DNA of 63,328 nucleotides, the filler included, from Perkinsus chesapeaki ATCC PRA-425 (lineage: Eukaryota; Protista; Perkinsozoa): assembly GCA_013115145.1 (NCBI GenBank). It is 4 parts of 4 records of this genome, joined end to end, with 100 filler letters (N's around TTAATTAATTAA, not from the genome) between each part and the next. Parts side by side here need not be neighbours in the genome. Positions count along the whole stretch, not along the records: positions 1 to 17,745 come from JAAPAO010000680.1; 3 more parts are not named here. The stretch is one strand, 5' to 3'. This document shows positions 1,212 to 17,745 of the stretch, one piece after another (within the stretch, counting starts at the first letter, position 1; the number at the start of each line of letters is the position of its first letter). The translations under genes were made by a program, and so were the position numbers. The notes below the pieces were generated by a model, which saw nothing but the letters and a program-made list of their open reading frames with translations, had not been told where the DNA came from and ran no database searches.

Positions 1212-1402
1212 TATATTATATTTGTAATATACGGTATATAATACTGTATTTCCGCGGCAAGAGTTTGAGGACCAAACTCTTGCCACAGAAGTGCAGTATT
1301 ATAAGCCCAAACATTGGGCTCCAGCAGGCCCTTTCAAGAGAGAGTCTCTTTGAAAGACCATCCTCGAACCAGTTATTATTGGAAAGAGTTTTCCCATCTA
1401 GC

Positions 1403-2683
1403 ATGGCTCCGAATCACGACCCTTATTCGCAATTGCCGATTGACCTGCAAGAAATGTAAGTGGTGTCTGTTCTTTGAAGAATCGTTCCTAGGTTGTATTT
1501 CAGGTTAGCTTTTCTAGCAGAGATGGCGTGGCCCTCTGACGAGGAACCCGTAGCCTTGCCCACAGTCGCACCAGCGACTCCCGGCTCGACGACATTCACA
1601 TTGGCAACTACTGCGGTAAGATGCTCTAAGAAACGCTTCGATCAGCATGCTTCCTTTCAGGTTCCAACGTCAACGCTTCCGGACCCGACAACGAAGGCTA
1701 CCAGCAGCACCGGCGGATGGTAAGTTCATTGAGGGGCTGTAGGGAAATACTCTAAGAGCGTTTCAGGGTATCGACTGTGAATAGTGAATTGCCATTGGTG
1801 GGCTATGTTGACACAACGAAGGCGGACATTAGGACCGCTTCAATGATGACCACTACTGCAGTGAGTGTTCTTTGGAAAAACAACTGATTAGGTCAGTCAG
1901 ATTGTTGTTCTCGTTTCAGGGTCCTACCTTGGATAATTCGGATTTGTGGTCGGAACTTCAGGAAATGTAAGTTTTGCTCCGAACAACCGAGCTGCGACAC
2001 ATCGCTCTCAGCGATTCGCCGAGTTGTCATAGCCCGCCTGTTTACTAAGAGTTGTTGGAAGAGTAGCATTCAATATACTTTATTTCAGGCTGGATAGCCA
2101 AGACGAACTGTGGGGTTTCGACGTGGAACCTTCGACCTTGCCGCCAACCCACACGCCAACACTACCGGCAACCCTATCGCCAACTCCAACGGTTATCGGC
2201 TATCAAGGATGGGCGACTACATTCAGCCCCGAAGAAGTGGAGATGATCCAAGCCATCGACCAGGTTAACGAAAAATGGAGTGCTGGATGGTAAGCAATGC
2301 TCAGTAAGGATTCTAGAAAGCTTAGTTTTCGGTCAATTCTCGTGAGATGGAAAATTTCCATTGGAAAAAAAATCGCTCTCCTGATGGAAATTTCCTCTTG
2401 CCAAGCAATCTGAACTATACACCTTCCAAGAAATACCCATAGCTCATCGAACTCTCATGATGTTTTTCTCGAAATTTATGTTCTGTTTAGGATAGTTGGC
2501 ACCATTGTTGGCTTATCGGTAATCCTGAGCGTCACAGTGTACTGCCTTTGCTGTTACCGGAGAATCCGCCAAATGATAACTACCAAGATCGCGAGATCAG
2601 AGCCCGCAGAAGAGAAGGAAAGTAAATCCGAGACGGAGCGTCCCGAAGGGGAGCCGGAAGTCTCCCACGTCGAGGAGCCATGA
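1403..2683 (+). CDS. Multi-exon Thr/Pro-rich (mucin-like) single-pass membrane protein
   Basis: Exons bounded by GTAAG/GTGAG donors and CAG/TAG acceptors encode T/P-rich segments. The last exon gives WIVGTIVGLSVILSVTVYCLCCYRR (TM plus basic stop-transfer) and an acidic tail ending at TGA 2681-2683. Start codon is tentative. Confidence 0.6.
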
Positions 2684-3784
2684 TGCGTTCAGCCTATAAG
2701 GTTATTTTGCTCCACCAGATAGACGATACTACATGGCCGTCGATGCCGTGTACGGGGCGGTTAGGATCTCAATGAGATGATACCACGGTGTATTTACTCG
2801 TTATATGGTTGGAGTTTGAGTCGAAACAATTCCCTATAATATGGTCCCTGGAATCCACTTGCTCTCAGAGCATTGCTCTGGCTTGAACTTGGCTGACTGG
2901 AACCGTGAGACCTTGGGCATGTCCTTTGAGGGTGACTTGAATCATTGATGTATTGAGGACTACCTCTCGAACAGGTTCTATCGAATATGATGCGAATCGC
3001 ATCATGCGATGTGCTTCCCGCATATAGTGTGAGCTCAACTCAGTCATTGCAATTCACTGAATTGAATTCAGATTGTGCGTTGGAAACTTATATTATGAAA
3101 GGAACGAGCAATACTTATCGACTAAAGCAACGAAACCAAGCTCGCGTAAGTTGATTCCTCAGGTAGTTCTTAAATACCTTCCTGTGATTTCTACTCAGTG
3201 AACCGATAAATGCAGTGTTGCTACGGCGACTGGCTGACTGGTAATGAGACTCATTTTTGTCAACTGCGATGTACTGTACTTGCACTGTACTGTAATCTCA
3301 TGTGCTGTAATGTACTCAACTGCAACACTCAGTGCACTGAGTACACTGTACTCTAACGCTTCCACTCTTTGCCAAGGTTTCTGCAATAATATTGCAGCAA
3401 TATGCAGCCTGTCTATACGATCTGGCGCTTGGATCGGTGACACCGACTCGGTGTGCGCCGCACACTGAGCGTCAAAATGGTCGGCAGCACTAGATGTTAG
3501 CGAGCATTGTTCACGCAAAATTGGAAATGTTTACAAATCTTATGGTTAGAGAAATACATGAATATTTTGCAGTCGGAAAGCTCGGATGCCCGAACGGTTC
3601 CAACCCTCCTCTCACCCTCTATCAAGCGACTTGCTTCACGACCAGTGTGACCACAGACGTTCTCAAGAGCTCCGGCGGTTAGAAGAGGATATTCGCATGC
3701 TAAGCGGTAACATCAAATATACTGCCCCGAGACTTATTCAATTAACTGCCTCGGGCGTCTCGGTCGGAAATCCGTAAATGCTCG

Positions 3785-4213
3785 CCAGTCATTGACTGGA
3801 GACCTTTTTCTGGAAAAGTTTTTCCAGTTTCCCGCCATTATGTACCCCGCAACACATGCATTCAAGTAGTATGACTATGAGTATAATACAATAGTAGTCT
3901 ACTATAGTAATTTGGTCGTCATGTTGGCAGGTTAGATATTCACAGTATCTCTGCGAGAAAAAGTGTATCAATCTAGTGTGATACGAGAAATGATCAGATT
4001 CCACAGTTAAAGTCGCAGTTGCCTGGTGTTCTTCGTGGTGTCTTATTTGTGCAGCACGAATCGTGCTGTCATCAACGATATCTTATCGTGGTTCTAGAAC
4101 TTCTATCGGCTTTGCAGTAGTACTGCAAAGTACTAGGGGGGGCAGATAAAGACTTTATCTGTTCATACATAGTTCGTACTGCAGCAGTACGAACTCAGCT
4201 GTTGCAGCAACAG
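3785..4213. repeat. Cluster of perfect palindromes with a 1-nt centre
   Basis: Arms of 7 bp (3785-3799), 7 (3891-3905), 8 (4052-4068), 10 (4110-4130), 9 (4143-4161), 12 (4171-4195) and 7 (4199-4213), each checked by reverse complement. Confidence 0.9.
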
Positions 4214-5223
4214 TGTTGCAAACGGGCTCCGAGCCATAGCCTTTGACGCCAGACGCAGAATGTGTCACACAATGAACTTGAAGATGGTTTCAACTGATCC
4301 CTCGCATTAAGACGACCACTTACTGACAACAGGTTTTCGTACACCCCAGGCCTCGAAACTCGGTTGATAAAAAGGATAATGGACAAGAAAGTCGCTTGTG
4401 CAGTTCCCGTGGATTAACCCACGATACAGAGCGTTAGTAGCGGTCAACCCTTGTAGACTGCGGGAGTTGCCCGCTGCAGTCTACAGTGTCATGGTGCACA
4501 TCAAAGTACGCAAGCGAATGAGCTAATTAAGTGAACTAGCGTACAAGTCACATGTAACGGATACTTCAGTGTAACTGATAAATGATACTGTGACTGATAC
4601 TTGACCCCTAGTAAAACTAGGCTAGGACCAAGTCCGAGCCGCGCTCTACCTAGCCGGATATACGGACCATATAATATGGATAGGGAAGTTTTCACACGCT
4701 TGAGAGGATTTAGCCAACACAAACCCTGAGCGCTTGAGAGGGAAAATATAATGATTTCGCATTGCGGTCTTGCGCGCGCCAGGAACTTGATAGTGGCTGT
4801 ACAGTGAAACGCCTGATCGATATAGCGAAGCATGCTGTTTTCGTAAAACAATCGTTCGCTATGCAGTATTCAACTCTCAGTGAGTCATAGAATACGTACG
4901 AGTTTGTTACGCGGCTACTTTTCTCGTCATGCACTTGCACGTATCAGCACTGGTAAGTGCTGCAATGGTGCAGAATTGAAAGGATTGTTAGCCGAGACTT
5001 CAAGTCTCAGACTTGTGCTAGACTCTGAAAATTCAGTGCCTCAATTCCTCGAAAAATACTCTGACAGCCACGCAGAACCTGCGTCGCAGATGCTTCGCTT
5101 ATAATACCTATTTTGGGACTATTGAATTCCGCTCAGCTACAGTCGCTCAGCGCAAAGGTCCATCATCGGGCCCTCGATCGATGATGAACCGATATTTCAA
5201 TCAGTTATTTACCCTAATAAGTA

Positions 5224-6600
5224 ATGTCAATACTGCTATTCCTAATACCGCTCCCCATAGTTGGCTCGACCACAGTGGACCGCTGCGCTACAACATGCTC
5301 TATCACACCTAATTGTGTATCTTCGCATTGTATGGATTTTAAACTCCCAGCTGTATGCCATGGTATTGTTGTCCGACCTGATGGTTCCCTTTGTTCGGCT
5401 GATGATGGTCCTGCTAGCTGTAGTGGTCAACCTGCACCATGTGATAAGCTTTTCCCTTCCGAGCCTTATACTACAACACCAACGGTAACAACTAATTCTG
5501 TAACAACTGAAGTTAGTACGTATAGTACAACGACCTCTACAACTTATTCTTCTGATATTTTCGATTATCTCATCGGCACTTGGTGTAACACTCGTAGTTA
5601 TTCGGAAGGAATTATGTCTGTCGTGACATTCCTCGATGAGGATGATGTTTTGATACTTTATGAAGGTGTAACCTACGCTATGAAGTACACCATTATACCA
5701 TTGAACAAGGTTATTATCTCAACTGCAACACCTCCACTCGATCTGAGTATTGAGAAGTACCTGACGACAGCCACTTTCTTTGTTTTCTTTGATGCATCGT
5801 CATCGGCTCTAATAAGCCATCTGAAAGGCGAGGCTAATGGCAACTTCTTCAAGTCTGATGCAAGTAGGACATGTGGGCCGCTAACCACCCCCGATTACAT
5901 CACAACTTCACTGGTTACTACTCCGGCGACTCCTACTGGGCCCACGTTCGAGCCCACTGGATTATCCGGTGTATGGTGCGGCCGAGCTGGCGATAAGTTC
6001 GAGGCTATTCGGTTCACTGGTAACACATTTGCTGTAACGTACTTTTTCGAGAACTACTACATGCAATACTACTGGGCGGGTAATCAGATGTACGTCTATG
6101 ATGCTGACCCAGCTGATGAGGAGTATTTATCTGGACTTGAAGGATACGAGGTGGATTTCAGCCTTATTAGAATGGAATATTATGTAGATAAGATATATCT
6201 CTATTATGACGGCAAGTTTGCTGGTATTTACACTCGTGGAAGCTCTTGTGGACGCTTCGCAGGGAGGTCTCTCCCACCGACAATTGGTCTTCTTTCGTAT
6301 AGAAAGTTTTGTTCTGAGCGTGATACCGGACTACCATATTTCGAGGTTAGATTTACCCAGTCGTATATGACTCTACAAGTCTTTACTGATGAATACTTTA
6401 CTCGTTGGGATGATCCCATCTTACCTGCTAAATACTCGATTAGTTATTCTGATATCAGACTCATTGAACTTGATAATGGTTTTGAAACTCTAACGGATTT
6501 TGCTCAAGGCAATTTTAGATTAGTTTATTATGATACGTGGTTGAAGTTGATTTTTGAAAATGGGGAAAACGCTCCTCATATCAAACTCAATAGCTGTTGA
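5224..6600 (+). CDS. Intronless secreted/surface protein, 458 aa: Cys-rich N-domain plus three beta-rich modules separated by Thr-rich linkers
   Basis: Hydrophobic N-terminus MSILLFLIPLPIVGS, an 8-Cys segment, Thr-rich linkers, and a duplicated copy at the window start. Confidence 0.85.
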   Translation: MSILLFLIPLPIVGSTTVDRCATTCSITPNCVSSHCMDFKLPAVCHGIVVRPDGSLCSADDGPASCSGQPAPCDKLFPSEPYTTTPTVTTNSVTTEVSTYSTTTSTTYSSDIFDYLIGTWCNTRSYSEGIMSVVTFLDEDDVLILYEGVTYAMKYTIIPLNKVIISTATPPLDLSIEKYLTTATFFVFFDASSSALISHLKGEANGNFFKSDASRTCGPLTTPDYITTSLVTTPATPTGPTFEPTGLSGVWCGRAGDKFEAIRFTGNTFAVTYFFENYYMQYYWAGNQMYVYDADPADEEYLSGLEGYEVDFSLIRMEYYVDKIYLYYDGKFAGIYTRGSSCGRFAGRSLPPTIGLLSYRKFCSERDTGLPYFEVRFTQSYMTLQVFTDEYFTRWDDPILPAKYSISYSDIRLIELDNGFETLTDFAQGNFRLVYYDTWLKLIFENGENAPHIKLNSC

Positions 6601-7007
6601 TTCTATTGAATACTACAGTTTATTTTCACTGGCTCATTTGCTAGGAGACATATATGCCGACTCTTTCTTTTCAAGAGAATATTGTTGTGTTTGTAAAGTA
6701 CGTAAAGTTAACACCCCAACCAGTTTGTCGGGTAGCTGCAGTAACACACTTCAAGTATCGGTACGTGAGAGGTGACATCAGTTAAGGTCCACAATTGCAA
6801 GGTCGGTTGGTCACATCGCTCTTCTATGCAAGTCTTGCATCATGCCACTGGTATCATGCCAGGCGTGTTGTTTTCAAGACAGCAGCTATGGCGCAGTAGG
6901 CAAATACTGGCAGACAATGATATTGATAATTTCGCCCGCGCGCATGTGAGCGGGACAGTTTAACTTTTCTTCGATAAGAAGCGCGATTGAAAATTATGAT
7001 TTTCCAA

Positions 7008-7080
7008 TAGCACACACGAGATTTGAACCCGGGTTGCATGATGTGTAGTCATGTATACTAACTCGTTGAGCTAAACCGCT
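7008..7080 (-). pseudogene. Degenerate tRNA-like sequence (apparent anticodon ACA)
   Basis: 73-nt cloverleaf layout: TAGCTCAA A-box, perfect CATGA/TCATG anticodon stem, GGTTCAAATC B-box. Acceptor pairs 5/7 and the D stem is broken. Confidence 0.5.
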
Positions 7081-8079
7081 CCAAAAAACTAGCATTGGGA
7101 ACCCCGGTCAGCCTCGAGCGTGATTGGCGTTCGCCCGAATAGCTATGAGGAGCATCGATTTTCACCTGTGGAACACATCGTTTTGTGATGTGTTAATGAA
7201 AGCTGTGATGATGATGAAACCAAACATCAGCTACTAGAGCTGAATCTTCATGTTGATTCTACAACATTTTTCTGAAAACAGCAAATATCTTACGTTGAAC
7301 CGTGCAAGATACAAGACAGATTCGTCTTTGAGCGATCTTTATGGAATTGAACTATGTATGCTGTTGATGATGATGAACTTTATAATCAGCTACTAGAGCT
7401 GAAGTCTCATGTTGATAGTACATTCCTCTGATAACAGCGCCATTTCACGCACTACTCGACAGGACAAGGCAAGCTCCATAGCAATTTTTTTCGTTGATCG
7501 ACGGTCCATGATCGTTTCACCAAGTGGTGTTGACTTGCCAGTACCGGTACATTGAAGCGACCAAACCACGGTTCTGTATTACGGTTATTATATCCCCCTT
7601 CAACTGTAAAAGGAAAGCGCTGCTAAAGTCCGATTTATCGGCGTAACTCTTTAATGGACGCCAAAATCACACTGCTCACTTCGCTGACATACCATTACGG
7701 TTTTGTTATAGTGAATCTAGATGCAGTACTTTGCTATAGTTTCAATGGTCACACAGCCGTACTTGCTAGTACAGCAACAGCGATGGCATCATCAGAGACA
7801 TGAACCAAGGTTTATTAAGCGTGCTAAAGATAAAATGGTATTTTCTCGTGGGGCTAGGCAACTGCTGGCGCTTTCGTTGATAGTTGAGTGTCAATATGAG
7901 GGAATAGCCAAGGATTGTTATCTCTCAAGCTTGTGAAAGTTCATGCAGGGAAAAGTGTTCATGGCACGGGGATTTAGGGAAGTTTCGATGAGAAATGTTC
8001 CCCTTTGAGTGAAGACAGAAAATGGGATAATCGCCGATTAGTAGCGATAAGGCGAGATGATCTTAGTTATTGTTTGAAT

Positions 8080-11000
8080 ATGAAAGACTCTGATAAAGAC
8101 GACGAGAAAAGGAGGATACGATTCGGCGGGTAATGCTGGTTGACATCTAGTGCCAATTAACTATATTTCAATTCGCTTCGCTGTATTAGGGAGTACGTTA
8201 CATGGTTCTGCTTTGTATTAGGTAGTATCAAGTCACTGGAATCATTTTGGTCTCGTTGAATAGTATTTCATATTGATGTTAGATTCGGTCTTAGACTAGT
8301 CGTTTAGGTAGTATTAGTCTGGATAGATTACTTCGTATACTGTATGTCAAGTTGGTGCAATTCTTTTACGGGGGTATCTTATAGGGCGGCTTGCTTACGC
8401 TTGCATTTGGCGAGTGTATCTTGATAGTGATATGTCTATGTAGTACTAACAGAGTCCTATATAGTATATTACATTATTATATTTACTATGCCTTATATGG
8501 TATATTATATTATTATATTTACTATGCCTTATATAGTATATTATATTATTATATTTACTATGCCTTATATAGTATATTATATTATTATATCTAATTTCGA
8601 ATACGTAACTTCGCTCCCAAAATCAAGCATATCTTGCTATTATTCAGGGATGATAGTCCCCAGCAAGATCACATCCGTCTTGGTCAGCCTTCTAGACCAG
8701 CATTAGTAACAAGTCCCGATCACGCTAGAAATGTAGGAAGGAAGATAAGGTTCGATGAAGCAGCTATTGCGGAACATGACCTGGAGAGGTACTGATAAAT
8801 GCTATTAAATTGACAATTTTACTCCTCAAAAACGTACGGTTTCTAGTGTAGTCTCGCTGGTGCTGAAATGTTTCAAATAGCTCTCTGGTCGTTTCGCGCT
8901 GGGGACTGTTTCTACGTTTAACCGTATATTGTACGATGAGCTCTACAGAAATGTTTGACGTGAACTATACGAGACAAGGATCTATCCAGCCTAACAGAAA
9001 TGTGCACCTCGAGTTTCTGCTCCTATCGCGGATATAATGGAAGTTGTGATAGGACTATCAAAATGTATTCCTTTTTGGATCATTTGGTGTTTTTCTGCGA
9101 CTCCCTAATCCGAAGCGCTTACCGATTGCCTTCATTCTGGCTTTCCGCTGAAAGGGTATTTTCTCAGTGAACGCAATCTGATAGATAAGCTCATATTGAT
9201 ATTAGGGAGACGTAGAAGAGTGTACAATATTATCAGAAGGGTTTTCATTTCATTGGGGAATTTCTTTCCATTGTACTTTCTGTTATATCACTTCATGATT
9301 TTTGAGGAACGTATTTCGTGATTGCACTCTATGCACAATGTGGGAATCGAACCGGGGACCTTTCGATTGCCTCAGGGGCACTCGCATGACTATTGATGAA
9401 CCCGACACACCATTTGTCCGAACGCCTATGAGTAGCGGAGAATCGAGCGAAGACTCTTCATCGACTTACGGTGGTCGAGGGGAGCATGTTCGCCTTGGTG
9501 AAGTGTCGAGGGAAGCTAGACTGCAGAATTTAACAAATGGGGTAATATGGGAGAGGGAGAGTTAAGTGCTGGACACTGGTGTACGGAGGATTTCGATATT
9601 ATTGGATTTTCTTGGGCAGCACTTCTCCTCTCACCTGGCAGCAGACAGAAGTCAGTATAGGAGTATAGCTGGAGGCTCAGCCTCTTACGAGTGACTATCT
9701 ATATTATCGAACTTAATTATTGTCTTCTGAGTAGCGAGTAGCGTTCATATATATACGGAGGTTAGGTATTATAAGTAATAATAAATCTATTAGACCTGAA
9801 TATATAATTTATTATATATGAAGATAAATCTATTATAATATAATGACCAGTGATAATATAATATGAATATTAACAAAGGTTATATCGTTGTTTGTCACGA
9901 TGAAGTGATGAGGTACAATGCGGCCAACAAATGTTGTTCATGTCACACTAATGAAGTAATTCAAGAAATGGAACCAAGGGTTAGACTCTGCCAGTGTTAG
10001 AGGAGTGTAGGTCTTATTGCTTGCTAATTGATAATGCTGTAGTATTATTATTATTCTAGTAGTAATACTTATCAGAACAGTGAATAGAAACGTGCTTAAC
10101 AATTAGAATTAATAATGTAAGTTCATTTTAAATATTAAATTATATAAATAATTACTGTCTATCTCAAGATGTTGTGCGTGTACTAGTTGAGAATAACGAG
10201 CGACTTGTATACTGGGACTGTACGAGTGGTTGTATTTTGTAACTCAGTGAAGACAGAACGGCCCGGTCTGTTTGGAGATGGTGGATAGTTTAATTACACA
10301 ATTGTAGAGTTATCTGAGAAACGTATATTCAGGTTGTTGATCACACTGCTGCTGCTGCCGAGGAGCAGGAGGGCGCCTCTTCCTCGTTGGGCTTCCGTAA
10401 TGGTTTGAGAATAGACTTCTCATCGACTGAGGCTGAGGAAGCCGAGGAGCTGGAGAGGGAAAGGAAGGCGAGGGAATTCCACGAGAAAAGAAGAAAACAT
10501 TATAATGAAATGCAGGTAGTACGGGGATGGACAAATCGATCACCTGATCGATATCTAGAGTAATCGTATCTGTGAAGCTTTATGAAGCTAGTGTGTCTTT
10601 GAAACTAGCAATAATACTGCATGAGTTCAGACCTATCGGTTTCCTTCCTAGTAGATCCGTGAGCCGGGCGTCGGTATATATTCGATGAACTCATCCAGTT
10701 TTCTGTTCACTCCTCAGCTGCATATATTTGCGGGTATGTTTTGGAGGGGCTGAAGTGAGGAAAAGTCTCAATTAATCACACTGTCTGATCGGAAGAACTT
10801 TAGGGATTTTGAAAATGTGCAAGGACGTCTCGCACTGAATAGTTTCGACCTCTCTAGATCGCTCGCACTATATGTCACATTGTTTCAGCTCTCACTTCAG
10901 CTCCACCAGATCATACCCGTAGATCGTTACTCTGTTGGCAATTTTCGTTTCCTTGCATTTATTTGAAGGTCGGTTTGTTGTTCATGAACAGAAAGATACT

Positions 11001-11382
11001 GGCCAATAGAGCTGTCTTTTTGACGATTTTAGTCCGGTCTTACACTTATCCTTCGATGAGGCTTTTTTGACAATCCGCTCACTGATTTCAATGTGAAGAA
11101 TGCCATTAGATTCTGCTGCTCTCCAAAAATGCACACCGATCAGCGTCTACGATATTATTCTTATTTTCCCATTAGTTTCTTGCTTCAATTTTGCGCGTTG
11201 GGCGCTTACGAACTTCACTGAGTATGATTTAATTGTTCCCCGATGTTGTTTAGATGGTTCGTGCATTGAGGGCGCAAGGACGGCTAGATACATCCGAGGA
11301 AGAGGATGACGCGGAAAGACAGCAGCAGCAAGCAGTTGGCGAGCCACCTGAGAACTGTCGGCATGTTAGCAATCCTTACTGA
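8080..11382 (+). CDS. PPP1R2: Protein phosphatase 1 inhibitor-2 (I-2/PPP1R2 family), at least 5 exons
   Basis: Phase-consistent exons 8080-8129, 8648-8788, 9376-9541, 10333-10515 and 11254-11382 give RKIRFDEAAIAEHDLERGTRMTIDEPDTPF and EFHEKRRKHYNEMQ, the I-2 RVxF-like, IDEPxTP and HYNE motifs. Confidence 0.85.
8458..8590. repeat. AT-rich 36-bp minisatellite, ~3.7 copies, in I-2 intron 1
   Basis: Unit tatatagtatattatattattatatttactatgcct starts at 8458, 8494, 8530 and 8566. Confidence 0.95.
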
Positions 11383-11607
11383 AGTTGTACTTGGCAGTTC
11401 TGTTGATTAGTTACTATTAGGTAATAGTTTCAGTGTGAGCTGTGGGGAGTAGTGTTGTTTGGCCTGGGGAGTCACAGGGGGGGGCATCTAGAGTCCGCGG
11501 GAGGAATGAAATTGAGGTTTCCTTGTGGGTTGGTAAAATTTGACCTCCGCATTAGGAACACTGATGGTCCCATGGGAGGGTTGATGACCTAACTGTATGG
11601 CATAATG

Positions 11608-11694
11608 GTTAGGTTAAGTAGTTATCTTACAGTAGGTTAGGCTACAGTTAGGCTAAGTAGTTATCTTACAGTGGGTTAGGCTACAGTTAGGTTA
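11608..11694. repeat. 39-bp tandem repeat, ~2.2 copies
   Basis: gttaggctaagtagttatcttacagtaggttaggctaca at 11608 and 11647. Confidence 0.9.
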
Positions 11695-11786
11695 TCAAAA
11701 TATATTAATAAATGCTAATACGAATACGTATAACTAAGAACCATTATGACATAAAGTCTGTATTAGCATTTATTAATATATTTTGA
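11695..11786. repeat. Perfect 27-bp inverted repeat with 38-bp spacer (foldback or tiny MITE-like)
   Basis: tcaaaatatattaataaatgctaatac (11695-11721) is the exact reverse complement of 11760-11786. No clear TSD. Confidence 0.9.
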
Positions 11787-12301
11787 AGCTCTCAGTTAAA
11801 TTGTTGTCAGCAATTTCGTATCGGATATGCCGAAATAATCGTTAGCTCTTAAGTGTAGACTTGAAGTCCGAGAGTTTCGTACGTAGACGAGGGAACCAAG
11901 ATGGAATTTGTCACCGATTATGTTCGCTGAAGGAACCTTAACCAGGCGAACCAGCCCGGTGTACTAGTCGGACAAACTTTGCAGTGGTGCCGTCGAGGAC
12001 TATTTCGCATTGAGGCGCATTAGAACGTTTCTTATCGGAATGCAAAACTCGAGCCGCAACTGAGAATACTCATCATTGGGAAACATTGATAGGCGAGTAT
12101 CCACGAGTCCGCTCGGATGGGGTTAGGTCTTCCTTGCATGTCGTGTTTGCACTGACTTTGCTGACTCCGATTGAGCTTGCAAAAACTGCGCCATCGCGGA
12201 AACGCCTACTCCATAGTGCGGCTACCATGTGTGGCACGAAGTAGGGATTATGCTTAATATTGCGAAACAGTTAACTAATGCCTATTAATTAGTTTTGTCT
12301 A

Positions 12302-13009
12302 ATGTCTGTACCAACACATATATATGCAGCCAGTAGTTCACCAATAACAATGCCGACGAGAGCAAGTCAGTCCGTGGGTGTCAGCAATGGGACAACAGGA
12401 GCAACAACACCGATGGACGCGAAGAGGATGGCGGAAGAGGTAGCAGCCAATATTATTCAAAGTTGCTGTAGTGCGGAAGCAGCATCGGTACTTAAAATTT
12501 GGGAATTGCAGAGGTTGTTTAATAAACCGATTTTGAAATTCAAAATCGATTTCAGAACTGCTTTTTACACCTTGAAGGTGAAGCTGGAATCGATTATGAA
12601 TCCCAGAATTGATTTAATGCATATGGGAACAACTTTCGAGACGCAAGGTTTTGACCTGCCAGTTTTGGTCCTGCATCCACCGGATCATTCGATTAATACC
12701 GTGGGGTTGTTGATGATGGTTCAACTGCTCAGGCGATGCTGTCGTCCTCTCCTGAGATCGGTCCCACTGGAAGCACGACTGGCAGTGCAGGAGGAGGCAA
12801 GGAGACCTCTTTGGGGCTATCGCTTTTTAGGAAACAAGGGTGAGAGGGGAAGCGGATACTCTGTGCAAAAGGGAGGGGAATATCGGACATTGGTCGGCAG
12901 GCATGTGGAGTTCTGCTGTGGTAGAGTGATAATATCGAGTATTATGTTCCCCAGTGGGTCCGTGCCATCTCGTGTCGAGCGCAATTTGCTGGTTGGGAAG
13001 AGCCTTTGA
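12302..13009 (+). CDS. Intronless 235-aa ORF of unknown function, possibly a retroelement relic
   Basis: Only ORF length and a plausible low-complexity N-terminus support it; no motif recognised. Confidence 0.3.
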   Translation: MSVPTHIYAASSSPITMPTRASQSVGVSNGTTGATTPMDAKRMAEEVAANIIQSCCSAEAASVLKIWELQRLFNKPILKFKIDFRTAFYTLKVKLESIMNPRIDLMHMGTTFETQGFDLPVLVLHPPDHSINTVGLLMMVQLLRRCCRPLLRSVPLEARLAVQEEARRPLWGYRFLGNKGERGSGYSVQKGGEYRTLVGRHVEFCCGRVIISSIMFPSGSVPSRVERNLLVGKSL

Positions 13010-15334
13010 TTTTCGCGCATTTGCGTATCTCACATTGGCACTATATATAGGAAATGAATCCGTTCAAATGGAATGTATTCCCAGTAGGCCATCCATTACC
13101 ACACAGGTGACAGTCTCGCGTTCATAATGGCATTGTGGGCGCGATGTCGTACCGAGCGCGACTCGTTGGTTAGGAAAGATCTTCGTTTCTCGTGCATTTG
13201 CATATCTACAAACTGGCACCCACTTCATAGTGGAGTCGTGCCAAATGGCGTATGTTAAGCGATGATCCAAATGACTCCCGCGATGTTGCACGTACCAAAT
13301 GATTTTCATCGTAGGTACCTCCTGAAGCAGAGTAGCGCGTACTTCACGCAGTGGTTGGAGAGGTAATAGGCATGTAACGGTGTGGTCATTAGTTGGTAAC
13401 GGGCCTTACAGCCTGCTGCCATGTACGGAGGATCTAAAGGAGTTTATCGCGTACAGTGATGAGTTTGTTAGTAGCAGTCGACCCGAAAATTTGAACTGCT
13501 GTACTACCACTACTGATGTTCCTATAGACAACTCAACGCCAAATGGAACGAAGTGAAGAAGTCTTAAACAAGTTCAAATGAATAATAGTGATACTGATAC
13601 TATATCTATTCTCATTCACTTAACTCGTTCTACAGCATGCATATCTCTTCAAAGTATCGCTCGCCCAAAGATATTGCACAATTTATGCGCAATGCGACAG
13701 TGCGACGCATCGGACTCACCCCCGCCGGAGCGCTATAACTATTTTCCGTTTTGTGTATTTTTTCTACTGTTAGGAGCTCTAGCTAGTCAGAACTAACGAC
13801 ACTTGTTCTCTAGACGCAAAAATGACGTTTTAGCGCATAATATAACGGAACCATGACACAGCAATACTTTTATCTGGTCTGGGGCTCTTGCTGTCTGTAT
13901 TGCAATGATTTAGATATGTGACGTTAGAAGGCCCGATGTTGAAGGTATTCACAACTGCAGCCCATCATCAGCCACGACAGAGTGTGTTCCTGGGGCGAGT
14001 AGCAGTAGAAGGGATGTGGTCAGCAAAGGAGAACGAGGACGTAGGCGGCGTGGTGGTGGTGGTGGTGGCGTTGTTGTTTGGTGGGGTTTGCGTAATAGTT
14101 TGAATAGAGAGATACTTGTTGTGCCACCATTAGGCATATTGCTAGTCCAGAAGAAATAGTGACTGCATACCTGTCGTGATACCAGAAATGCGAGAAAGGT
14201 GTAATGATATAGTTCGGTGGTTCACCGAACTGTATCATTGCCAAGCTTCATCGGTGGGGTAATGTTAACTCTGGAATATACGTATCTCTCTAGCCTCGTA
14301 GAAATGTAATCCTCGGGGATCGAAAGGTGCTCCTAATGCGGAAGATATATAACGGAGGCCTTACTGCGAAATATCATGTTTCTAGACAAAGGAATCTTTT
14401 CTGGGAACATTTGTTGGAATTCCTTTGTGACTCATTGATGGAGATCGCTGCAGGTTGAAAAGAGCTTTCTTGGGAAAGATGTAGATTGATTCTGGTCTAT
14501 AGAATGAGCTGCCGAGAGAATCTCGTAGTTGCTCCTATTCAATAGGACCAGCCAGGAACAATTACATTTAAAAAAGTACTTCTTGTCAGAACGCACGGTG
14601 CAGTTTTGTTGAATATTGGCTAATAGGAAGTATTCGAGCTTCACTCGCTTTTGGTTTAGTGGTATCAGAAGACTTCATTATGTTATTGTATTTAGGATGG
14701 TTACGGTGAAGTTTGGTCTTTCGTTATTCGGTGGCCACCACCAGTGAAGAGCCATGAGGAAGGTAAACCTACGAATAGCAACAGTTCTCCCGCTCCCTCT
14801 GCTTTGCTAAGTGACACTTGAGAAATTGGGATCCTATACAGCCAGTGAAATAAGGGGGATTGATCTCCGGTGGCCATATATTTCTCTCCGTCGAACTGTT
14901 ACAACAACAAACACGTGAAACTCGTGGTGATTCCAGAGCCTAAGTTCGGTCTGCCCTCAGCCTCGAGAAGGCCTTGGCCAGCCATCTTAGGAGTGGGGAA
15001 GACTTCACCGGGAAGTGGTGATATTCCTGACATGGAATGCTCCCAACTCCTGTGCGACCTCCGTCGTGAATCATGACCTGTGGTGAACAGTTTGACTATG
15101 TGGGCACTCTTTATTGAGGGTCCTAAAGACTCAGTCTTTTAATGCTGCAGTAATTTAAAGGTTGAGTATAAGCATATGTTGCAGAACAAAGCCTGATTGT
15201 GCCTGGTGGAGGATACCGTATCGGCGATACGGTCTCGCGTATCGCCCCGCACAACGTGAGGACACGAGTCTAGTGCGCCAGTACATAGTATTTTGTGAGG
15301 TTCTCGTTGATAGGAATGAGATGTTTCATTCCCA

Positions 15335-15794: not shown

Positions 15795-17745
15795 TCGATA
15801 CTAAGGGTTATGAATGGTCATATTCTAGGTGACCGTTGTTGTGGGTACTACAACACCCATAACTGTCCTACCGATACCGCTAGTAGCAATTGCATCACGT
15901 CTTACTAGTAGTTCATTATAAACTACTACTATAAGCTATTCATTATTATTAATGCAGTGATGGGCGAAGCTGATTTAGTAACCCTCAGGAGGTTTTGAGT
16001 TCATTTCTGCTAACAATAGTTGGAACGACTCCTGATAGACTCACGGTTATCTACCATTCAACTATCGCGCGTTTATCTGCGAGCGTAAAAGTCCCATTTG
16101 AGAAGCCTCATTTGAGGACACTTATACCGCTGAAGAATAAGCTCCATTCAATGAGGTCATTTATTCTACTAAGCTGAACTAACCTTTCTTTCTGCACTCG
16201 TCGGAATGAGCTTTGTCGAAATTTTCAGCGATTACAAGCACGCACCGAGTATCATTCTTGCAGGTGCCGTAGATCCACTCTCTTGGCCGCCTCCGTCCGA
16301 ACTCGAGTTTTTACACATTGGAAGTTATGATCAGCAAGAGTGCGAGGAATGGTTTAGAGCGGTTAAGCAGGCCATCATATCTATTGATAGAACGTAAGCT
16401 TCTCGTTGGTCATCGTTTATGGCCAAGTGAGCGCGATAATGAGCTGCCGAGTTCAACTTCAAGATTACAGCTACCAGCAGTAGCGCACTGCCTGGCCGGC
16501 GGGCCTCCCTGGCTTGCCCAGCCCTGGTACTGGTCGGTTGACTACTCTGGCCAAGAACACAATAAAAGAGTGGCTTGGATTTTATCTCGGGTTTTATCTC
16601 TTGCAATTGTGACTTGCTGTCATTCATCGATAGCTATACGCTGACACTTCTCCAAAGTGTGTTATCCATTTATTATCAAATAGAGCACAAGGCGCAGTAT
16701 GGCTAAGACTTAGCCGCTAAGTAGCTGTATCGATGTTAGCTCTTGGACAGAAGAATCACTCGAGCTCCGAAATTCTCACCCACAGGAGTCCGGCTCCTTA
16801 TCGATCCCCCGTCCATTTGGAAATTGGACCGGAGCTAGCTCGTGACTTGTATCCTGCTTCCCACCGCCAGGCGTAAAACATCAACGCATCTCTCAGCAAA
16901 ATCTCTTTGTCGAGACCAATATCTTTCATGGTTGCTGCAACTCTACTAGCGAATCGCTAGGGTAGGCGTAGGAGAGGAGTCTCCCCAGGAATGCGGTCGA
17001 ATCGAACTGAGTGGTAGCGGTGAACTCGAGACTCGTAATGCGTCGGGCCGCCGAGACATCTTCATTTTTCGAAGCGCTCCTAAGCCTAGGTCGAGTCCCT
17101 GGGATCTTCGTTCTGCAGTTACCGCATTCAAAGTCAATATCGGCAAAGAAGGCTGTCAAGTGACAATAAGATCACCAGCGCAGAAGCATCTAGCGAGAGC
17201 CAGACGGAGAAGGTGGCAGCTCATAGGTTAATCTTGACCTACTTTGTATCTTTCGATAGGTTCGCGCGCATCTTCCAGACCGATTAAAAAGCAAGTATCC
17301 AGCTGCTTTGGAAGATGCCCACAGACTTGATCAATGGGAACCTGTCTTCGCCGGCCATGGGAGTCAAATCTCGGTGAGTTACGACGAATGTGAATAGTAG
17401 ATATGCTATCATTATCCCAAATGATAAGTTGCATTCCTCCAAGGGGTGGTCGACAGCCATTCCTTTCGGTTCAGGACTAATGAGCGAAGCGCGAGTGAAA
17501 CTGACGGTTCACATCCCGAATCTTGCGTGTAGAAATCTTCTGAGGGCGAAACTTCCTCGCTTAATATCAGTGGTATCTAATTATATGCCATTGCTCCCCC
17601 TACGTATGTTGGCAGGTGTTGCTGTACTTGGCTCTCGTTGAACTTGAAGTTAATGAATTGATAACGCATCGACATAGAGCTCGTGGAATAAGAATATATA
17701 CAGCAAAGTTTATGAGTCTACTACTAGACAATCAATCTACACTAA

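Follow-up and report, generated by a model that had tools for sequence, protein, structure and literature searches.

Odd palindromes throughout the Perkinsus chesapeaki genome are probably excision scars of cut-and-paste transposons, most likely hAT elements

The non-coding DNA of Perkinsus chesapeaki, an alveolate that parasitizes molluscs, carries many small perfect palindromes with a single unpaired base at the center, and we propose that these are the excision scars of cut-and-paste transposons that make an 8-bp target-site duplication, most likely hAT elements. We consider this explanation probable. The window that we analyzed is a stretch of 63,328 nucleotides, filler included, joined from four records of the genome; its first 17.7 kb are a single contig (C3149) of a 41.7-Mb assembly that comprises 3544 contigs. 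A field of such palindromes at 3785-4213 drew attention to this contig, but small scars of this kind are strewn across the whole genome, and the field is one patch among them rather than a local element.

An Excess of Odd Palindromes

A sequence-only reading of this DNA had listed seven perfect odd palindromes in the field, with arms of 7, 7, 8, 10, 9, 12, and 7 nt, and all seven are present. The even palindrome gttctagaac at 4091-4100 is also where that reading had placed it, at a frequency that is at the chance level. The same reading had proposed a comparison with shuffled controls. We counted perfect palindromes with one central base (spacer 1) and arms of at least 7 nt, and we used dinucleotide shuffles as the controls. 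The 17.7-kb contig has 36 such palindromes, which is far above chance (1.20 ± 0.91 in the shuffles). In contrast, palindromes of the same arm length without a central base (spacer 0) are not enriched (1 on this contig vs. 1.33 in shuffles). Most of the odd palindromes (26 of 36) are within the first 5 kb, and nine are beyond 14.5 kb. The 1.4-kb coding ORF at 5224-6600 has none with arms of 7 nt or more.

We also scanned twenty stretches, 91.7 kb in total, that belong to other contigs of this assembly. These contain 99 spacer-1 palindromes with arms of at least 7 nt, as compared to about 5.6 expected, and only 8 spacer-0 palindromes. The density is uneven across these stretches, from 0.3 to 3.6 per kb. 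When all of the sequence is pooled (113,334 bp), there are 142 spacer-1 palindromes with arms of at least 7 nt vs. about 7 expected, and the enrichment is seen only at spacer 1: spacers 0 and 2-12 are near expectation. So, the dense field that had been described is real, but it is not peculiar to 3785-4213, as the excess extends throughout the contig and to unrelated contigs. The suggestion that symmetry rather than a motif is conserved was borne out: the sequences of the scars are unrelated to each other.

Anatomy of the 22-nt Unit

Three regularities of the palindromes had been overlooked, namely a sharp mode of arm length at 7 nt, pairs of palindromes whose centers are exactly 7 nt apart, and the membership of two palindromes of the field in such pairs. 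In the pooled 113,334 bp, the counts for arms of 5 to 10 nt are 133, 53, 93, 25, 14, and 3, so that arms of 7 nt occur 93 times vs. 5.2 expected. Beyond 7 nt, the counts drop to about a quarter per step, which is expected of a fixed 7-nt arm that is extended by chance. The same sequence has 45 pairs with centers exactly 7 nt apart, and no other distance recurs. Within the field, the palindromes at 4052-4068 and 4199-4213 are each a member of such a pair.

Grouped into chains, the palindromes of the pooled sequence form 107 singles, 41 doubles, and 2 triples. As there are only 2 triples for 41 doubles, the double is a defined unit and not one stage of an open-ended iteration. We rejected iterative fold-back at a DNA end, with 7 nt added per round, because about 11 triples would be expected from the number of doubles. 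Both triples are at G000:C3500 (L022 5426-5675), in a tandem duplication of about 210 bp with a triple palindrome chain (arms of 7, 14, and 6 nt). These are the only triples that we saw, and they probably arose by duplication of a scar.

The double is built on an 8-mer, W, and reads W[1-7] + revcomp(W) + W[2-8], for a total of 22 nt. (Written out, this is p K q K' p° K q°, where K is 6 nt, ° marks the complement, and W = pKq°.) The perfect 22-nt template has 33 copies in the pooled 113,334 bp, as compared to about 0.002 expected. On the 17.7-kb contig, perfect doubles are found at 967-988, 1063-1084, 2989-3010, 3050-3071, 3382-3403, 4994-5015, and 16701-16722. We also scored imperfect copies over the template's 14 pair constraints and found 25, 30, 35, and 120 copies with 1, 2, 3, and 4 mismatches, respectively, vs. 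0, 0.6, 4.8, and 39 in shuffles. These counts are a long decay series of scars. Overall, the density is about 0.3 perfect doubles per kb, or about 3 per kb if decayed copies are included. Among the singles with arms of at least 7 nt, 24 of 66 have 5-6 of the 7 matches that a second palindrome centered 7 nt to either side would have (vs. 3.5% of random centers), and those 24 are decayed doubles.

The field itself contains two doubles with one mismatch each: one at 4046-4067, which covers most of the palindrome at 4052-4068, and one at 4199-4220, with the target CTGTTGCT. Singles with 7-nt arms lie at 3785-3799, where a second half is not recognized, and at 3891-3905. A palindrome with 8-nt arms and a 2-nt spacer, at 3810-3827, resembles an odd palindrome with one extra T in a run of Ts.

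Another class of event is the split footprint, of which we found five. In each of these, two separate palindromes share one 8-mer, their centers are complements, and their arms extend into the flanks. Four of the five are on other contigs, and we roughly estimate that chance would give fewer than 0.02. Without exception, the offset is 7, which implies an 8-bp target; targets of 9-11 bp were never seen. The classical short footprints that are known from plants and yeasts occur here at the chance level.

Events That Distinguish Two Paralogous Copies

The genome contains a single further copy of the region 3130-4714 of the window, with about 90% identity, on contig C3249. The two copies differ by four insertion events in about 1.1 kb at roughly 9% divergence. 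First, the window has AGTCAGCC and GCCAGTCG as intact, single 8-mers at a site where C3249 has a 28-nt insert that consists of two adjacent doubles. (These 8-mers overlap in an empty site at approximately 3225-3241, on the minus strand.) Another double, a 14-nt insert, is present in C3249 opposite an empty site near 4357 of the window. Finally, the window has 64 extra nt (4120-4183) where C3249 has a single intact 8-mer, reading CTT-TGCAGTAC-GAACT.

This last event is a split footprint. Its left half (4110-4130, 10-nt arms) consists of flank plus W[1-7], then a central g (the complement of W8), and then the inverted copy, which continues 3 nt into the left flank. Its right half (4171-4195, 12-nt arms) consists of inverted W[2-8] with 5 nt of right flank, then a central a (the complement of W1), and then W[2-8] plus flank. 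Both halves give TGCAGTAC as W, so the palindromes with 10- and 12-nt arms are two halves of one event. The 40 nt of filler between them (4131-4170) contains the odd palindrome with 9-nt arms (4143-4161), along with a short stretch of nearby sequence (4118-4135) in inverted form. Snap-back of the kind attributed to polymerase theta may account for this filler; we rejected the idea that it is the main process, since neither a 1-nt loop nor a constant unit of 8 nt is consistent with it.

In all four of the polarized cases, the centers are the complements of W8 and W1 and the other copy has a single intact 8-mer, with the polarity being based on a single two-copy paralogue and no outgroup. The scars at 4046-4067 and 4199-4220 are common to both copies and are therefore older than the duplication. 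The 10-nt-arm hairpin at 4452-4485, which had been described correctly, is also common to C3249, but with its 14-nt spacer it falls outside the spacer-1 class.

These comparisons bear on whether the palindromes exist at all in the genome. The assembly is fragmented (3544 contigs), and an error of sequencing or assembly might be suspected. We consider an artefact highly improbable, however, because two scars are common to copies that differ by about 10%, because other scars are private to one copy and face clean empty sites in the other, and because neither a decay series nor a transposase-like target bias would be expected of an artefact. De Bruijn, k-mer, or library artefacts were set aside on the same grounds.

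The comparison also bears on function. The sequence-only reading had suggested, among other origins, a cruciform-forming origin or boundary element or a structured ncRNA. More generally, the palindromes could be hairpins or cruciforms that are under selection (as an ncRNA, a terminator, or an origin or boundary element) 5' of the gene for a secreted protein. The field does lie within 5 kb upstream of that gene, and the 4100-4225 strand folds far better than its shuffles (z = −7.6). But this would be a local role, and the feature is found genome-wide in unrelated sequences whose presence or absence differs between paralogues. Also, when we looked in C3249 for a compensatory change at 4052-4068, we found that an inner arm base differs and that pairing is not restored. 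The scars decay in a continuous series, their fixed geometry depends on the adjacent target rather than on a motif, and the palindrome region has no match to an Rfam family. So, we give selected hairpins very little credence, and the scars themselves account for the strong fold at 4100-4225.

A larger difference between the copies is a stretch of 591 bp (3312-3902) that is missing from C3249. The first three palindromes of the field fall within this stretch, with the one at 3891-3905 at its edge. It is bounded by a direct repeat of GTAAT and has no terminal inverted repeats, and it is probably either a microhomology-mediated deletion in C3249 or a non-transposon insertion in the window. A second paralogous segment, G000:C574:452-2155, is 84% identical to the palindrome-rich stretch at 1353-3135 of the window and should yield further polarized events.

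Excision of hAT Elements as the Probable Origin

Hairpin-mediated break repair or transposon excision had been among the origins proposed from the sequence, and the paralogue, the geometry, and the target bias all support it. Several lines of evidence point to hAT elements in particular. Footprints of Ac/Ds are palindromic insertions centered on the complement of the base that adjoins the element, with arms of up to 20 nt in yeast and with frequent use of microhomology (PMC5873905). Hermes makes 8-bp duplications at nTnnnnAn (PMC10368747), and flanks are closed into hairpins by MULE, hAT, Transib, and RAG (PMC5499845). In our reconstructed targets (n = 43), T at position 2 and A at position 7 are found in 41%, vs. 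a background of 26-27%, which is a modest bias toward nTnnnnAn (about 3 standard deviations). Also, the hAT dimerization domain (PF05699) scores above its cut-off at 11 genomic loci, and the open frames that contain it are as long as 532 amino acids. Thus, the feature combines a retained 8-bp duplication, complement centers, and the nTnnnnAn lean with the presence of a hAT transposase in the genome.

We infer an element that was once present at each site, a hairpin intermediate, and an annealing step, as follows. The element would insert and duplicate the 8-mer W. At excision, the transposase would nick one base inside each flank and close each flank into a hairpin. The left hairpin would then run through the flank and W[1-7], the complement of W8, and back along the other strand, with the right hairpin as its mirror image. 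The host would open or unfold the hairpins well away from the tip. If both were unfolded by at least 8 nt, one 3' tail would expose revcomp(W) and the other would expose W. These tails could anneal over 8 nt, and after trimming of flaps and filling of gaps, the product would be W[1-7] + revcomp(W) + W[2-8]. This product consists of two odd palindromes of 15 nt each that overlap, with centers 7 nt apart, and it leaves the site 14 bp longer. If the ends were instead joined without annealing, the result would be two separate and longer palindromes plus filler, as at 4110-4195. The annealing step would account for the constant 8-nt length of the inverted segment, for the absence of triples, and for the chance-level frequency of short classical footprints. 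Given the latter, however, host repair would need to be unusually uniform. A profile search of the genome for the Ku domain gave one weak match only.

The density of the scars is very high for excision scars, and this counts against hAT excision. Furthermore, we found no site that is occupied by an element with a matching 8-bp duplication in the 113 kb that we sampled, and two scans of this sequence for elements with terminal inverted repeats and 8-bp duplications gave only chance-level matches or large palindromes.

Could a different kind of transposon be responsible? MULEs have target duplications of 9-11 bp, and for Merlin, we know of no hairpin chemistry. Nevertheless, another superfamily that forms flank hairpins (such as MULEs) or another family that duplicates 8 bp (such as Merlin) could give the same geometry. 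The MULE domain PF10551 is found at 25 places in the genome, with long open frames, and is more numerous than the hAT domain (11 places). In addition, the MULE Muta1 forms flank hairpins and makes 8-9-bp duplications (PMC5499845), and remnants of Merlin have been reported in P. marinus (PMC8101967). Yet the offset in our data always indicates an 8-bp target, and both the nTnnnnAn lean and centers that complement the adjacent base are documented for hAT (PMC5873905, PMC10368747). Also, over 90% of Muta1 excisions in yeast are precise; we did not find the position of its nick relative to the flank in the same report (PMC5499845). Overall, we consider these families unlikely sources of the scars.

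A further possibility is that the scars do not derive from transposons, and that some process converts an 8-mer to an inverted triplication de novo. A double U-turn template switch might do this while DNA is replicated or a break is repaired; alternatively, a host or domesticated hAT-like nuclease might act on bare DNA. The lack of an occupied site or of a resident 8-bp-duplicating element in 113 kb would fit such a process, as would the very high rate (about 4 events in 1.1 kb between copies that diverge by roughly 9%) and the near uniformity of the product. On the other hand, a split footprint needs two ends that each have a full copy of W, which implies that the target had already been duplicated; triples are nearly absent; and the target motif fits the preference of a transposase. 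We therefore view a transposon-independent origin as quite improbable. Template switching, which the sequence-only reading had also suggested, has the additional difficulty that it is not expected to give a fixed 8-nt unit whose switch points lack microhomology. In the four-point model of Loytynoja and Goldman, short template switches reportedly make perfect short inverted repeats out of neighboring sequence in a single event. Unlike the scars, mutations of this type have switch points and lengths that vary, with no constant 8-bp unit or complement centers, and the model does not predict two-half footprints that share one 8-mer. More broadly, an undescribed process might act on bare 8-bp sites, without excision, to make the 22-nt inverted triplications. 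Its agent would be a host or domesticated hAT-like nuclease, or else abortive hit-and-run transposition. We doubt that this is the case.

Comparison With Known Systems

RAG hairpins form directly opposite the nick, so that even palindromes are expected, and the additions are usually of 1-4 nt. The P nucleotides of V(D)J recombination (RAG hairpins that are opened by Artemis) are like the scars in that palindromic additions derive from a closed flank hairpin that is opened off-center, but the palindromes that we describe are odd, with 7-nt arms, and spacer-0 palindromes are not in excess.

The closest likeness is to hAT elements (Ac/Ds, Hermes, and Tam3, under Coen's hairpin model), where the 8-bp duplication is retained and the palindromic additions are centered on a complement (PMC5873905). 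Long arms are possible in those systems, microhomology is used in joining, and there is a lean toward nTnnnnAn. What differs is that one product dominates here, with a full inverted copy of the 8-nt target (22 nt in all), while the 1-3-nt additions that are typical of plants and Candida are at the chance level. Also, hAT footprints have been studied as events in assays, whereas the scars of P. chesapeaki are a fixed, genome-wide population that is known from sequence alone.

Repair after excision of the MITE mPing is similar in that it is guided, at the donor site, by homology that comes from the duplicated target (PMC4561436). With mPing, however, annealing of direct copies restores the site precisely (PMC4561436). 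In P. chesapeaki, unfolded hairpins would expose the duplication in inverted form, and annealing would leave an inverted triplication. Finally, we considered the introner hairpins of Amoebophrya and rejected them, as their architecture is different: the inverted repeats are at the intron ends and are accompanied by direct repeats (PMC7789003).

Other Features of the Contig

The gene downstream of the field (5224-6600, plus strand) encodes an orphan secreted protein of 458 amino acids with a signal peptide. The protein is 76% identical to the P. chesapeaki hypothetical protein FOL47_006689 and 41% identical to a hypothetical protein of P. olseni. Paralogues with about 80% DNA identity are found at G000:C2814:22151-23563 and G000:C2072:109490-109830, so the secreted protein belongs to a small Perkinsus-specific gene family. 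Neither of the contig's two long ORFs contains a Pfam family.

A MITE-like repeat of about 110 bp at 12517-12627 aligns with itself in both orientations, at 71-73% for the reverse complement, and has over 30 copies in the genome at 84-88% identity. We rejected it as an 8-bp-duplicating element, as its ends look TTAA/TAA-like. An odd palindrome with 10-nt arms (12528-12548) lies inside this MITE, so the surrounding ORF of 235 amino acids (12302-13009) is probably spurious. That palindrome is the only one of the spacer-1 class with arms of at least 7 nt in the 7.7 kb from 6841 to 14532. The GC skew of this region is strongly positive (+0.13 to +0.19), and its ORFs, other than the doubtful one, do not exceed 87 amino acids. 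The region might be either a minus-strand gene with many introns or a young insertion. Short repeats within it, at 12043-12158 and 13514-13698, have copies elsewhere.

The contig ends within a repeat of about 130 bp (17617-17745). At least 8 other contigs have copies of it with 97-99% identity, so the break in the assembly at this point is probably due to a young dispersed repeat. We also considered this repeat, which from about 17617 seemed to start with CAGG, as a hAT terminus, and rejected it because the first bases vary between copies. The bases immediately upstream of it differ from copy to copy as well. At 921-1158, there is a long inverted repeat of about 220 bp, centered between palindromic CTTTCGAAAG ends, of a class that is distinct from the 15-nt scars.

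Implications

Footprints of the hAT type are already known as a kind, but the uniform scar and its density look new: in the literature that we searched, we did not find the 22-nt scar or its genome-wide density in Perkinsus. Thousands of strong hairpins are a hazard for annotation, as they could be mistaken for regulatory or RNA elements, and the scars are a notable source of insertions between paralogues. If a process on bare sites were responsible, then each event would create about 14 bp of new palindromic DNA, and such DNA would make up several per cent of the intergenic sequence of Perkinsus.

If the scars do arise by excision, then very many past cut-and-paste transposition events can be read from the Perkinsus genome, as from a fossil record. 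By a rough extrapolation from the 113-kb sample, there would be about 10,000 perfect doubles, and several times more with the decayed copies. Each scar would reveal its exact 8-bp target, so that the traffic and local hopping of transposons could be mapped, and bursts could be dated from the decay of the scars, without experiment. The scars would also show the preferred route of repair in an alveolate parasite, which would be long unfolding of hairpins followed by annealing instead of short end-joining.
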